A stretch of DNA of 64,000 nt, taken from positions 7,812,001-7,876,000 of the forward strand of contig OZ176050.1 of the NCBI GenBank assembly GCA_964247055.1. Reading direction: 5' to 3'. Both the position numbers and the translations under genes were made by a program. This DNA comes from Paragordius varius (lineage: Eukaryota; Animalia; Nematomorpha). This document shows positions 31,309-54,100 of this stretch, one piece after another (position 1 is the first letter of the stretch; every line of letters starts with the position of its first letter). The notes beneath the pieces were generated by a model. It worked only from the letters and a program-made list of their open reading frames with translations. It ran no database searches and was not told the DNA's origin.

Positions 31309-36112
<4,804 letters not shown>

Positions 36113-36890: not shown

Positions 36891-37228
36891 TATATATATA
36901 TATTTATATATATATATAAATAATTTATTTGGTAATAATTTTATTGATCACAAATAAATTAATTTTGTAAAATGACCGGTTTTTTGGCATATATATGTAC
37001 AAATGCAATCACATATAAAAAAATATTATTAATTAAATCTAACAGAATTCAATATAATTGAATATAAAATTAATAAAATATATACTTAAAAGCATATTTT
37101 TTGTGCTTTATCACTATAATATCTAAACTAACTATTCCTACAAATCAAACAAATCTTCAATACTATTAATAGTCGGTAATTATATTACGATAAAGATCCA
37201 TTTAAACTTTATTCAAAAGCAATAGCAT

Positions 37229-38785
37229 TTAAATATTTTTTGATTTATATTCTTTGATTAAGTTATAAGGGTCATACACTACATTATTGAGCAAGTATAA
37301 TTCAAGAGCACTAATGTCGGACACATCGTCGTTATAAGATGCACGGGAGACCATACGTGCAATGATTGGAAAATCTGGCACAGATTTTACCGTTTTCCAA
37401 TCAAACGATTTATGCCTTTCATAATAAATTGGTGGGAACATAATACTGGCACTAAAAGAGTATTTAGGTTCCATTGGCCGTGTTACATTTATACCGGATT
37501 CCTTTAATTTTACATCATGCGATGGACTGCGATAAAAATCTAAGATTGAGTAAAATGCTCGCGTAAATGCCGAAATATCTCCAAACAATCTATTATTGTT
37601 TTGGGTGTTTGGCGAGAAAGAGCGTCGAAAAATAATCATAAACTCGTTTTCTTTTACTGGATTTAAGTAGGGCAAAACTACGCAATTATGATTTGACGGA
37701 GCATCAATAATATTATAGGCATCACCAGTATAAGGGCATGGTGCAGCTAATCCAATTAGAACATAAATTTCAATTAACTTATTTATGTAAGCATTAAAAA
37801 TATGAGACAATTGCGATAATGAATCGCTATCGAAATTGGTTGGTATCTCAAAATCTGTAAATGGATAGGCATTCCTTTCATTGTAATTTTCAATGACTTT
37901 GGACATCAACCCCTGAATTTTACCATAATATTGATTTGGTGATAAAAATACATGAAGATGTGGATGTATTTGGCTGGCACCTCCTTTAGGAAATAAATCC
38001 CAAGAAACCATTGGAAACATGGCTTGAGGTATATTAGGTTTATGTGTGTTGTGATAAAATGCCGATTCAAAAAACCAAAGTTGAGCAAGATCCAGCATTG
38101 AATGGACTATACTGTAATTAAGGGCAAATGGGTCATGAACCCTAGATACAACTAAACCATGCCAACGGTCCAATTTAAACGCGTTTGAGAAAGAAAGTGC
38201 AAGGGTATTTGATAAACTTTTGTTCAATTCATCGAAAGCTGTGTTCGTTTCATGGTTACAAAAAGCACAAGTTGGTTGAGAAGTTTTAACCAAATCGCTC
38301 AAAAAGCTACGAGCCTTATTACTAGCTAAAATATCATGCGGTTTACGAAGACCACGGAGTATATTAAAAGTTGTGTGTTCTTCTGTAATCCTATTTATAA
38401 CATGAATCACTGGTTGATTGTAAAACTGATTGGAAAGTGTTCTGTAATTATATCTTGAAATTTTATTTCCAAAGAGTATATTAAATAATTTAGTGTGAAA
38501 TTTTGGAGAGATACGGTCATACAATTTGGTTTGTATATGAATGATTTCATAAAAACTTATAAAACTTTGATATAGTAGACAATTCTGATCTTTGGAATAA
38601 TCGTAAAAAAGAGCTAATTCTGATAAGGATGATGGTGAAATTAATGATACACATTTAACATGTTTAAAATTGTGGAATAAATTTGTATAATTTATCAAAA
38701 CGGATAATGTAAATATTAGAAAAATAAAAACGAGAAAAATTTTCTTTGATCGCACCCGCAAAAGATGTGTGCACCATTCAGGCAT
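37229..38785 (-). CDS. Intronless 518-aa HIT/GalT-superfamily-like protein with N-terminal membrane anchor
   Basis: Single uninterrupted ORF. Basic residues followed by a hydrophobic stretch (RSKK-IFLVFIFLIFTLSVLI), a CAFC zinc-site-like motif, and GGASQIHPHLHVF resembling the GalT G-x-S-x-x-HPH loop and the HIT HxHxH motif. The coding call is strong; the family assignment rests on motifs only. Confidence 0.8.
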   Translation of the reverse strand: MPEWCTHLLRVRSKKIFLVFIFLIFTLSVLINYTNLFHNFKHVKCVSLISPSSLSELALFYDYSKDQNCLLYQSFISFYEIIHIQTKLYDRISPKFHTKLFNILFGNKISRYNYRTLSNQFYNQPVIHVINRITEEHTTFNILRGLRKPHDILASNKARSFLSDLVKTSQPTCAFCNHETNTAFDELNKSLSNTLALSFSNAFKLDRWHGLVVSRVHDPFALNYSIVHSMLDLAQLWFFESAFYHNTHKPNIPQAMFPMVSWDLFPKGGASQIHPHLHVFLSPNQYYGKIQGLMSKVIENYNERNAYPFTDFEIPTNFDSDSLSQLSHIFNAYINKLIEIYVLIGLAAPCPYTGDAYNIIDAPSNHNCVVLPYLNPVKENEFMIIFRRSFSPNTQNNNRLFGDISAFTRAFYSILDFYRSPSHDVKLKESGINVTRPMEPKYSFSASIMFPPIYYERHKSFDWKTVKSVPDFPIIARMVSRASYNDDVSDISALELYLLNNVVYDPYNLIKEYKSKNI

Positions 38786-38804
38786 AAATTCAGTCGTTAA
38801 TAAA
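38786..38804. promoter_or_regulatory. 19-bp spacer between divergent start codons; 5' ends must overlap or promoters are intragenic
   Basis: CAT at 38783-38785 and ATG at 38805-38807. The next Met of the minus-strand ORF is more than 200 codons downstream. Confidence 0.5.
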
Positions 38805-40614
38805 ATGACTACTGCTGCAAGACCAACTTGGGATACGGCTAAAGGTGGTGAAAATGATTTAAGTAAACTTACTAAACAATATTCCTCTCGTGATTTGCCA
38901 GCTCATACAAAATTAAAATACAGGTATTTTAATTTATTGATTTTAAGGCAACCGGGACAATCTACCCATTTAGATTTGACGAAGCGCAATTTAAAATTAG
39001 AATTAGAAGAAAAGGAAAAGAATAAAGAAAAGATCAACATCCAGCCAGTGAAAAAGATAAAATATGAACTGGCAAACTTGGATGCCGATGATCCTTTGGA
39101 TGAAGATGAGGTTAAAAATACTTTTGCTTTGCAAACAGCCATATTATTGGCTAAAGTATTTCCCATTGGTGTTAACAAAAAATTCTATTTTTAGGACATA
39201 GGATTTTTTATAACTATGTTTTGATTATCTATATACGATTTAACCAACATTCAATTAACTCTTTCGTTACGCACCAAATAAAAGATTACTATAACCACTT
39301 ATATGGTCCTTTACTTTGTGTCATTTTTTGTGATATCTTGGATAGACTAAATACAAATTGGCTTTCTCTTAATCTTAACTTTTTAAAAGCAATCTGTAAG
39401 GTAAGGTGCTTAAAAAATAATCCATTCACTATATTTGAATAGAAAAAAAATTTAACTTGCTTGCTTCTAACGTTAAATATCTATTGTAATTCTTAATTTA
39501 TTTACTCAACTAATTGTTGTAATTGCCAAATTTTATCGATATAGAATGATGAACAAGAGGACGATCAGGATGAAGACGAAGAAATGGCCGAGTTAATGGC
39601 TGAACTACAAAGAATCAAGAAAGAAAGGGCACTCGAGAATGCAAAAAAGGTTATAAAAAATATATCTATGTATAACTTAAAACCTTTTTAAAGGCATAAT
39701 TTACATTAAATATCGGAGAAAGTTATATCAACGTTTAATGACTGCGAACGGTCGCTAATCTTATTTTGTTTTGTATAAAATTTAGGTTTATTATTGAATT
39801 ACTGTGAAACACTAATAAGATAATTAATGCAATAATTTTACCTGAAAATATCAAATATTAGTATAATTTATTTTTTAAATATAAATCATCCAGGTTTTGG
39901 CAGGCAGTTTTTATTATTAAGCCTATACATGACTTATTTACTCTTAACTTAAAATAAATTGTAAAACAAAATGTTTAATTCAAAGCTGAAGTTGTCTATA
40001 ATTTTATGGAAATTTATTTGCCAATTATAATTACATTCTAACATTTTATAACGAAATTTCTTGAGCTATTTACAATATATTTTATTTTCGCGTTGACTTG
40101 TATGACATATTTTTAATCAAATGGACACATTGAAAGAATCATAATATATGGTGATTTAATAGACAAAATTTCAAATAGAGTTTTACAATTAAAAACTCAC
40201 TTATATGATAATCCTTAATTTTTATTTGCACTGGCCATATCAAATTTTATAACTTTATAAAACTTTGATATTTTTTTATTTTTTTGTGCTTTTAGGAAAT
40301 GGAATCAAAATTGGAACAAGAGAAAATTCGTACTGAAAATATTTTGAGTGGTAATCCTTTGTTAAATAATCAGCCTGGCTTTAAAGTCAAACGAAGGTAC
40401 CCATTTATTTGTCATATTATCCTAATATTTTTCAAGCTTACTAAAAAAAATATATTTAAAATTTATTTATTTTTTAAAAAAAATTAGATGGGACGATGAT
40501 GTAGTTTTTAAAAATTGTGCAAAAGGTGATGTCACAACCAAACCTAAACAATTTATTAACGATATTGTGAGATCCGATTTTCATCGAAGATTTATGGAAA
40601 AATATATTAAATAA
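38805..40614 (+). CDS. CWC15: Spliceosome-associated protein CWC15 (5 exons, ~198 aa)
   Basis: [99 protein letters not shown]. Confidence 0.95.
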
Positions 40615-51104: not shown

Positions 51105-54100
51105 ATGAATATTCTATCCATCAATATTACATTTTTATTTTATCTAGGCTATGTATTATCTGAAATAGATTTTTTAAATGTCAATGATTATTATGAACTT
51201 TTAGGAATCTCAAAAGAAGCATCCAAGAAAGAAATCAGGAAAGCATTTAAAAGTTGGGCACTTATTTATCACCCTGATAAATCGGTATTTTAACATTTTA
51301 TTTTAGGATAACCCGAAAGCTCATGAAATATTTTTAAAAATTAACAAAGCTTATACCGTCCTTATTGATGATTCTAAACGCGATATATATGATCGATTGG
51401 GGGAAAGTGGCCTAGAAAAAAGTGAAAAAGATGGTAATCAACAACAATGGCAGTGGTATGAAAGTTTTACGTTTTATCACCAAAACTTTGGTTTATATGA
51501 CGATGATCCAAATATATTGACCCTAACTCACCAAGATTTTATTAAGTACGTTGGACCTTTGATTGGAGCGAATAGGGAAGCTACTCACAACATACCCGGT
51601 TACACTGAGATATGGTTTGTGGATTTTTATTCAGCTCAATGCTCTCATTGTCGTGATTTAGCTCCCGATTGGAAACGTTTAGCGGCGGACCTTTTGGGTA
51701 TTGTTAAAATTGGTGCTGTAAATTGTCTTGAGGAATGGAATCTTTGCATGTCTCAGCATTTAACCTCATATCCCACATTGATACTTTTCCCATCAGGTGA
51801 AAGATTTGAGGGTACAATGAGTTACACAGCTCTTAAAAAATGGCTATTAACCCGTATCCCATCTCATCACCTTAAGTTTAATGGTATGATACCTGCTAAA
51901 GATAGTAAAGATACCAATGATAAACCATTGTTGTTGGATCAAATTGTTACGGATAACAGGAATCTTTATTTCACAATCCAAACTCTGTTTAAAAATGACG
52001 ATACGAATATAATGACTTCCACTTATTTGCATAATCATTTCAGTATGACATCCGATACCTACCCTTGGTTAATTTATTTTTGTCCATCAGCCACCAATGA
52101 TGCAGAAATTCAACACCATGCGTGCCCAAGTAATATCGAAATTCGACGCTTATCAAAACAATTGTATGGGTATGTTAATGTCATAAATTATAAATGTGCC
52201 ACGATAAATAACGATAATACCACGCATACAAATCATATACTTTGCAATGAAAAATACCTGGCAAAAGAAACCAGCTTTTCACTGTGGTATATGCCAGGAG
52301 GATTGGTTACTACATCATATAATGACAAACAAGATATTGAGATAAATTTGACTGATGGTCTGGGCATAAATATTTTAAGCGCAGATGGTAAATATAAATT
52401 TATACCTTTTACAATGTTAAATGATCCATCCAAATTTTCCACTTTTGTTGTTAACGTAATATTTCAATCAAATCTCCCTCCTATCATACCAACTATGGCC
52501 TTTTCCGATTTCATTAAGTTATTTCACGGTTATTCTGAACCATACAACGTGGCTGCATTAAACACAAAACTGGAATTTAATAAGGATATGTTGATTAATT
52601 ACCCGACCTTGGTGATTTTACTTTTGACCCCGATGAACTATGAATCCGATGTTTTTGAACGATTTAATTTAACACTTTACAGATTCAAAGCTACCCTTGA
52701 TGAAAAGGTATCAAACATCCCTTCCCTCAAAATCTTTTATTTCAAATGTTATGAAACAGAATACATATCAAAATATTGTCGAGAAACTTTGGGTATACAC
52801 GGGCCTGCTTCAAAATCTCACGATACTTCCGATACCCCTAAAAATCCAGAACACTTTGTCAATGCATCTTTCATTCTCTTCAAACATTTATTTAGTTTTC
52901 GGCCAAACACGGCTTTTCTCTATGGTTATGAAGCGTTTAAAGGGGATGTTAATCAACATCTTGAAAGTGTGTCTTCTAACAATCTTATGTCAGAACTTTT
53001 GACATTCATTATTGCTAGTCAAACTAGTCCTATGCTTACGCTCACACCAGCCGAATTTGACAAGTACCAGAAAATACGGCCTAAGCACAACGTTCATCAG
53101 TATTGGATTGTGGATTATTTTGCACCATGGTGTCCACCATGTATGCGTATGATGCCTGAAATACGAGTCCTTGGTTCGAACCTTATAACTCAAATTGCAA
53201 AAGCTGACCCATCCTTCAAAACTTATATTGCCATAGTTTCCATAGATTGTTCAGATCACCTGGAATATTGCAAAGCTATGGGTATTACCTCTTATCCATC
53301 CCTACGTTTCTACAATTTGTCCCAATACAATTCGGTAGGAAATAAACCCCTTGAAACATTACATAAGATTGAAGGGTTTCAAGCCTCACCAGCCATAGAA
53401 GAATGGGTAGAAGATATCATGAACCCGCCTCCTTTGGTAAATCTCAATGGTGAATTACATGAACGTTATTTAACAGAAGATTCTGGTCATTATATATGGT
53501 TCATATACTATGGGGCACAATGGTGTGGACCCTGTCTTCAGTTTGAACCGACATGGAAAAAGTTTGCAAAGGTAATCATTATTTCATTTGTTTTTATGGA
53601 TGTGGTGAATCTATTATATACATTTATAAATTGCGTAATCATTCCATTAAAAATATGATTATATTTCTTTGTATAGTCAATGCAAAAATTAGCCTACATC
53701 GGTAAAATCGATTGTGGGTTAGAAAAGGAGTTTTGCAGATCTATTGACGTACGAAGCTTTCCTCGCATCCGCGTTTACGTTAATAAAACTACTTTTTAGT
53801 AAGCACATTTTCTATATTTATTTCTTCCGCTTTTCATTTTTTTCATGTGAAACAGGTAGTACGATGAAACAAAAATATGTAGGTCGCACATTATCTTGTT
53901 CCTGAAGCCTTTTCTTTTTATCATATTTTTTAAATGTAATATGTACTTAAATAAAAATATATTTTTTAAAATAGTTTAAACATGATGATGATTTAATCTA
54001 ACTTTTGAGAAAAATGATATATGAGATTATAAAAAAACTCTCTTATTACAAAATTAATTAGATACTCTAACATTGTTTAAGAACTCCTCATGTTTTTAAC

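Follow-up and report, generated by a model that had tools for sequence, protein, structure and literature searches.

The GalT branch of the histidine triad (HIT) superfamily takes its name from galactose-1-phosphate uridylyltransferase (GalT or GALT; E. coli, PDB 1hxq and 1gup; human, PDB 5in3), which is cytosolic, carries no membrane anchor and has glutamine at the third position of its HxHxQ motif. This residue, Gln168, hydrogen-bonds to the nucleotidyl phosphate. Control of nucleotide-sugar supply in the lumen of the endoplasmic reticulum (ER) and Golgi is generally ascribed to transporters, glycosyltransferases and nucleoside diphosphatases. We know of no HIT/GalT-fold enzyme in that compartment, nor of any enzyme there that moves nucleotidyl groups by way of a histidine, and our literature searches turned up no HIT/GalT-fold enzyme in a secretory compartment. 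Here we describe a gene of the hairworm Paragordius varius that encodes a GalT-like protein of 518 residues with an N-terminal membrane anchor. The gene lies within a 64,000-nucleotide stretch of contig OZ176050.1 (positions 7,812,001–7,876,000), referred to below as the window. We put at roughly even the chance that the product is an active, zinc-containing homodimer of the GalT branch, anchored in type II orientation and facing the lumen or the cell surface, that transfers nucleotidyl groups from nucleoside-diphosphate (NDP) sugars; within this reading, the analysis shows the fold, the conserved catalytic and zinc residues, the breadth of the family, the conserved anchor with its type II charge bias and the predicted dimer, whereas the lumenal orientation, the NDP-hexose substrate and the preference for transfer over hydrolysis are what we infer.

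The open reading frame runs from ATG to TAA over 518 uninterrupted codons (window 37229..38785, reverse strand), and no other frame nearby approaches it in length. It encodes a basic tail, one N-terminal hydrophobic helix, a CAFC motif and the segment GGASQIHPHLHVF, in which HPHLH occupies residues 274–278. A sequence-only reading of the stretch had noted the same intronless frame, anchor and motifs and had proposed a GalT-like fold; the frame is confirmed, the fold is borne out by modeling, and the interpretation as a whole is supported in part. The AlphaFold model built from a 121-row family alignment has a pLDDT of 85.9 and a pTM of 0.85, compared with a pLDDT of only 34 for a model from the single sequence. 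It contains two tandem HIT-like α/β half-barrels in one chain, and all of the top 24 Foldseek matches are GalT-branch structures. Searched against the PDB, the family profile matches 1z84 (2.9e-7), a Bacillus HIT protein (5.9e-7) and E. coli GalT (6.6e-6), and hhalign aligns it with E. coli GalT at a probability of 92.5%.

His276 is present in 121 of 121 aligned members, His274 and Asn201 in 120 and Ser271 in 119; His276 and His274 align with His166 and His164 of E. coli GalT and with His186 and His184 of the Arabidopsis protein At5g18200. The predicted zinc site is formed by Cys173, Cys176, His217 and His274, equivalent to Cys63, Cys66, His133 and His184 of At5g18200, and these positions are kept in 97, 113, 110 and 120 of the 121 members, respectively. 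Every catalytic and zinc residue is among the conserved columns that the Paragordius protein retains (22 of 25 superfamily-wide, 33 of 37 clade-wide), and the orthologue from the hairworm Gordionus is also non-consensus at all three of the superfamily-wide deviations and at three of the four clade-wide ones. Because the conserved columns are kept and the deviations are mostly common to Gordionus, we read the gene as an intact and apparently active member of the family rather than a relic. Membership in the GalT branch, together with catalytic competence, is very likely.

The model supports, but does not prove, binding as a homodimer. The predicted dimer scores 0.84, against 0.01 for the best control; among solved structures, the mark was passed by 21 of 30 homodimers and none of 23 monomers. 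The predictor may, however, have drawn on known GalT dimers for this pass. At least 85% of contacts recur in all three runs, and the partner pLDDT is at least 78. In the model, residues 266–271 and 278 of one copy contact residues 488–493 of the other, placing His278 at the interface, and this pairing of the active-site loop with the C-terminal motif of the partner resembles the shared active sites of GalT.

The HxHxQ signature of the GalT branch is not found in the Paragordius protein, where His278 aligns with Gln168 of GalT. The near invariance of the first two histidines does not extend to this position, which is Gln in 87 of the 121 aligned members, His in 32 and Gly in 2. Histidine is enriched in the membrane-anchored holozoan clade, where 29 of 45 members have it, against 3 of 76 elsewhere. 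The tree requires at least 13 changes between His and Gln, and the motif of the Gordionus sister orthologue is HPHLQ. Since Gordionus has Gln and switches are this frequent among close relatives, the third histidine is not diagnostic of a hydrolase, as the sequence-only reading of HPHLH as a ‘hydrolase-type triad’ had taken it to be. We argue that His and Gln serve the same role at position 278, probably a hydrogen bond to the nucleotidyl phosphate by analogy with GalT. Four considerations weigh against a HIT-type hydrolase, in which HxHxH would send the nucleotidyl-histidine to water and the substrates, lumenal or extracellular, would be nucleotide sugars, dinucleoside polyphosphates or nucleotidylated proteins: the two residues appear interchangeable for one function; the architecture is of the two-domain GalT type and not the single-domain hydrolase type; the conserved motif that the partner subunit is predicted to bring next to the active site hints at an acceptor bound there in the manner of GalT; and the third motif residue alone does not decide between hydrolysis and transfer. 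We regard the hydrolase as unlikely.

The conserved residues and the genomic neighbourhoods of prokaryotic relatives point to a covalent nucleotidyl-histidine intermediate and turnover of NDP sugars. In such a mechanism, His276 would attack the α-phosphate of the NDP sugar, the sugar-1-phosphate would leave and a covalent nucleotidyl-His276 intermediate would form, with His278 stabilizing it in place of the glutamine of GalT. The nucleotidyl group would then pass either to phosphate, in a phosphorylase reaction like that of ADP-glucose phosphorylase, or to another sugar-1-phosphate, in an exchange like that of GalT.

The substrate lead comes from soluble prokaryotic relatives of ∼350–390 residues. 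A genome scan with a 12-row alignment confirmed no fewer than 539 loci for them, and the hosts include DPANN and Methanosarcinales archaea, Rubrobacteraceae and Anaerolineae. Among 80 loci fetched for neighbourhood counts (L018–L097), 38 have at least one NDP-glucose enzyme within two genes: a glycogen-synthase-like protein at 16, a sucrose-phosphate-synthase (SPS)-like glycosyltransferase (GT) fused to a sugar kinase at 15 (same strand, gaps mostly 5–15 bp), a sugar-1-phosphate nucleotidylyltransferase at 11 and GlgA at 7 (same strand, mostly overlapping). Single contexts with glycogen synthase, GH57 and a CBM48 protein are consistent with this picture. Apparent operons with GlgA or the SPS-like GT/sugar-kinase fusion are seen in Rubrobacteraceae and Chloroflexota relatives, and a GT3-like glycogen synthase adjoins relatives in DPANN and Methanosarcinales archaea. 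The prokaryotic branch may represent an unrecognized route to or from NDP-glucose. The neighbours point to NDP-glucose and are the basis for suggesting an NDP-hexose substrate, which also agrees with the best structural match, At5g18200; that the Paragordius enzyme itself acts on an NDP-hexose has, by this analogy, slightly less than an even chance.

The anchor is a 19-residue hydrophobic stretch (residues 16–34) with a Kyte–Doolittle mean of up to 2.4. The protein has a single N-terminal helix, more positive charge on the N-terminal side and no cleavable signal, as expected for type II orientation. The bias is a property of the family: within 15-residue flanks, Lys and Arg are more numerous before the helix than after it in 33 of 40 aligned homologues that bear a transmembrane (TM) helix, and net charge in the homologues runs from +2 to +8 before the helix and is about 0 after it. 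In the TM clade, Cys45 (39/42) and Cys69 (36/42) of the stem are the sole conserved cysteines apart from the CxxC motif. The prokaryotic relatives have ∼50–85 residues ahead of the catalytic core, too short for the stem that holds this pair. Conservation of the pair in a segment without a prokaryotic counterpart fits a disulfide in an oxidizing compartment, and a Cys45–Cys69 disulfide is probable. The charge bias and the cysteine pair together argue for type II topology. A cytosolic tail and a catalytic domain that faces the ER/Golgi lumen, or ends up at the cell surface, is the likelier arrangement by a fair margin of belief. The protein ends in KSKNI, which is similar to a KxKxx retrieval motif; Gordionus does not share it, and we took the similarity as chance.

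Several points weigh against the reading of an active, lumenal NDP-sugar transferase. The topology call is based on sequence rules (the positive-inside rule and the stem cysteines), and no N-glycosylation sequon is conserved. Because no sequon is conserved, a cytosol-facing version of the same enzyme, tethered to the ER, an organelle or the plasma membrane and serving localized NDP-sugar metabolism, stays a real rival. Two-cysteine zinc sites are common in reducing compartments, and the characterized GalT-branch enzymes known to us are all cytosolic or plastidial, which also counts in its favor. Set against it are the charge distribution across the family, the conserved stem cysteines in a segment that prokaryotic kin are without, and a tail–helix–stem–domain layout typical of Golgi enzymes, so that we give the cytosolic orientation about one part in five of our belief. 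We also know of no pathway that needs lumenal nucleotidyl transfer of this kind. The prokaryotic clade is distant (∼25% identity), and acquisition of the membrane anchor may have brought a change of substrate.

Expression is a further point on the same side. A homologue of the spliceosome protein CWC15 begins at 38805 (+; interval 38786–38925), and the start codons of the two divergent genes are 19 bp apart, leaving no obvious promoter room; both 5′ untranslated regions must therefore overlap the coding sequence of the other gene, or transcription starts in an unusual way. Among the public runs searched, none recorded as RNA contains the locus, and transcription is unproven. This absence, and the long branch of the hairworm pair in the tree (0.98), would fit a copy that has decayed, lost catalysis or fallen silent in the rapidly evolving genome of a parasite. 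The frame is nevertheless intact over a length that would stay open by chance with a probability of roughly 1e-19 at ∼30% GC, as estimated from base composition, and the conserved columns described above are kept. DNA contigs from public runs are identical to the frame, one of 1640 nt with zero differences, and other contigs differ at seven sites, five synonymous and two non-synonymous, the latter both in the anchor and stem. With polymorphisms so few and mostly synonymous, we consider decay improbable.

The Paragordius protein belongs to an ancient, previously unnamed eukaryotic family of the GalT branch. An exhaustive HMMER search of 1.84 billion representative proteins gave 376 relatives with E ≤ 1e-3, and 143 with E ≤ 1e-10, so the protein is not the one-off ‘GalT/HIT hybrid’ that it had first seemed. 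The nearest relative is the Gordionus protein (42% identity). At least 10 animal phyla hold members, as do Capsaspora, Salpingoeca, Chromosphaera and Trypanosoma. Named members come from Haliotis, Coptotermes, Priapulus, Asterias, Capitella, Exaiptasia, a bdelloid rotifer, Creolimax and Trypanosoma conorhini in addition to the unicellular holozoans above, with others from further cnidarians, sea urchins, hemichordates and a crab. The family thus reaches priapulids, annelids, molluscs, echinoderms, hemichordates, cnidarians, rotifers, arthropods, unicellular holozoans and a trypanosome; no member was present among the named vertebrate proteins retrieved. Recurring motifs are CDFC and, ∼91 residues on, GASQxHxH[HQ]. 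The gene models of Haliotis rubra (P0002) and of a second entry (P0023) contain two or three tandem copies of the active-site segment (AGASQ[IV]HPH[VM]HGFL), which were probably duplicated in assembly or annotation and are not a real repeat.

Source databases label all members ‘uncharacterized/hypothetical’ or, automatically, ‘GalT’. None of the members looked up has a recorded Pfam domain, and NCBIfam scans gave no match for ten prokaryotic members or, even at E ≤ 10, for the Paragordius protein. With the single Paragordius sequence, a PDB sequence search returned chance-level matches only and a word-index protein search was blank; it took the exhaustive HMMER search to bring the family to light. 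The word-index search also returned nothing for a 42-row alignment whose own members are in the database, which we read as a limit of the method on a gappy alignment and not as absence. A language-model look-up pointed to rotifer clusters labelled ‘GalT’. Literature searches found no characterized or studied member.

In the phylogeny, the protein falls in a 45-row holozoan clade (99% SH-aLRT) with the Gordionus protein as sister. Near the hairworm pair is a subclade (P0132, P0093, P0149) that is without the first zinc cysteine (Lys or Ser at 173) and His217 (Phe, Ala or Val), has no anchor and retains HxHxQ; it may be a zinc-free offshoot or a long-branch placement artefact. An intronless gene amid spliced ones, in a family with many prokaryotic members, could have arrived recently by horizontal transfer, could stem from contamination or could be a young retrocopy, and the sequence-only reading had suggested retroposition or horizontal origin. 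The tree rejects horizontal transfer. Against all three origins, the nearest relatives are animal and the sister is a hairworm, the GC content of the frame (33%) and of its third codon positions (26%) matches the AT-rich DNA around it, and CWC15, a typical animal gene, is less than 20 bp away. The gene is single-copy in the 110.5-Mb assembly, with no intron-bearing parent, and intronless orthologues occur in Gordionus (a 555-aa single frame) and Priapulus (one tblastn segment covering residues 1–493). These origins are effectively refuted. Orthologues in Asterias, Exaiptasia and Capitella have many exons over 5–13 kb (8–11 exons in other animals). The intronless state shared with Gordionus and Priapulus implies that intron loss or an old retroposition predates the Paragordius genome and is common to at least two ecdysozoan phyla.

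The features of the gene and its product are collected in Table 1. The splicing of all eight neighbours was checked in part, and introns clearly interrupt the CWC15 homologue and an actin-like gene. An actin or actin-related-protein exon lies at 35572–35793 (−), downstream of the GalT-like gene. No synteny with Gordionus was found, CWC15 being absent within 6 kb of the orthologue there. An exon of a DNAJC10/ERdj5-type multi-thioredoxin homologue (E 2e-53 to 5ayk) stays open for 753 aa at 51397–53658 (+); it starts past the J domain, such that at least one upstream exon is expected. Very long exons therefore coexist with ultra-short introns in the hairworm genome, and length alone does not make an exon unusual here. 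Immediately 3′ of the gene, at 36900–37110, word depth in the public DNA contigs reaches up to ∼8000, compared with ∼330 across the gene, a second haplotype carries small indels, and a stretch of 116 nt is replaced. The pattern suggests that a high-copy repeat or the edge of a transposon adjoins the gene.

Table 1. Window coordinates of the GalT-like gene and of features in its product
Feature	Window position	Strand	Evidence
Complete single-exon coding sequence, membrane-anchored GalT-like protein, 518 aa	37229..38785	−	Open reading frame list, single copy, DNA contigs
Basic N-terminal tail, aa 1–15, MPEWCTHLLRVRSKK, predicted cytosolic	38741..38785	−	4 Lys/Arg before helix, 2 after
Single transmembrane helix/signal anchor, aa 16–34, IFLVFIFLIFTLSVLINYT	38684..38740	−	Hydrophobicity; helix 7–45 in model
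Juxtamembrane stem and N-terminal extension, aa 35–122, with cysteine pair C45/C69	38420..38683	−	Conservation; pLDDT ∼90 from aa 50 on
GalT-like catalytic core, two HIT-like half-barrels, aa 124–490	37316..38416	−	
CAFC, aa 173–176, aligned to zinc cysteines C52/C55 of GalT and C63/C66 of At5g18200	38258..38269	−	Invariant in TM clade
His217, aligned to zinc ligand His133 of At5g18200	38135..38137	−	Conserved in 110/121
Active-site loop GGASQIHPHLHVF, aa 268–280: S271, H274 (zinc ligand equivalent), H276 (nucleophile equivalent), H278	37946..37984	−	Alignments
C-terminal motif R481...D490-x-S-x-x-E-L-Y, aa 481–497, predicted to reach the active-site loop of the partner	37295..37345	−	R481 115/121, D490 109/121
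AATAAA, possible poly(A) signal, 16 nt past the stop codon	37208..37213	−	Weak evidence, AT-rich genome

If the proposed activity is correct, it could be, for example, phosphorolysis or exchange of UDP- or GDP-sugars in the lumen, making lumenal sugar-1-phosphates, or nucleotidyl transfer in which phosphorylated glycans or proteins are the acceptors or donors. A conserved anchored family of this kind would add an unrecognized step to lumenal nucleotide-sugar or phosphoglycan metabolism. We suggest tentatively, at clearly less than even odds, that it is the first HIT/GalT-fold nucleotidyl-transferring family inside the secretory pathway and represents an ancient eukaryotic lumenal activity, kept in unicellular holozoans, in kinetoplastids and in most of the invertebrate phyla. 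For annotation, CDFC followed by GASQxHxH[HQ] provides a means of grouping entries now named ‘uncharacterized protein’, which number in the hundreds, and the soluble prokaryotic kin beside glycogen synthase and SPS-like genes offer easy first substrates for biochemistry.

The protein is distinct from the Leloir-pathway enzyme of the same animal. The curated GalT model TIGR00209 (EC 2.7.7.12) gives no match to it, and a six-frame search of the genome with this model found only a seven-exon gene for canonical galactose-1-phosphate uridylyltransferase (contig 2, 5855038–5857957, −); the Leloir-pathway enzyme is therefore present and separate from the anchored protein. The best structural match, the ADP-glucose phosphorylase At5g18200 of Arabidopsis (PDB 1z84 and 2h39), shares only 10–14% identity and is soluble with an HxHxQ motif, whereas the Paragordius protein has an anchor, a ∼90-residue stem and extension, several insertions and a third histidine. 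DUF4921/DUF4931 and the Ap4A phosphorylase Apa2, also of the GalT branch, are more distant than GalT and At5g18200. Hydrolases of the Hint and Fhit type are single-domain proteins of ∼110–150 residues, in contrast to the two-domain Paragordius protein; their match spans the first half-barrel only and scores far below the GalT-branch matches. Type II enzymes of the Golgi and ER (glycosyltransferases, FICD) share the layout of a short basic tail, a single helix, a stem and a C-terminal catalytic domain, but their catalytic folds are unrelated to that of the GalT-like protein.
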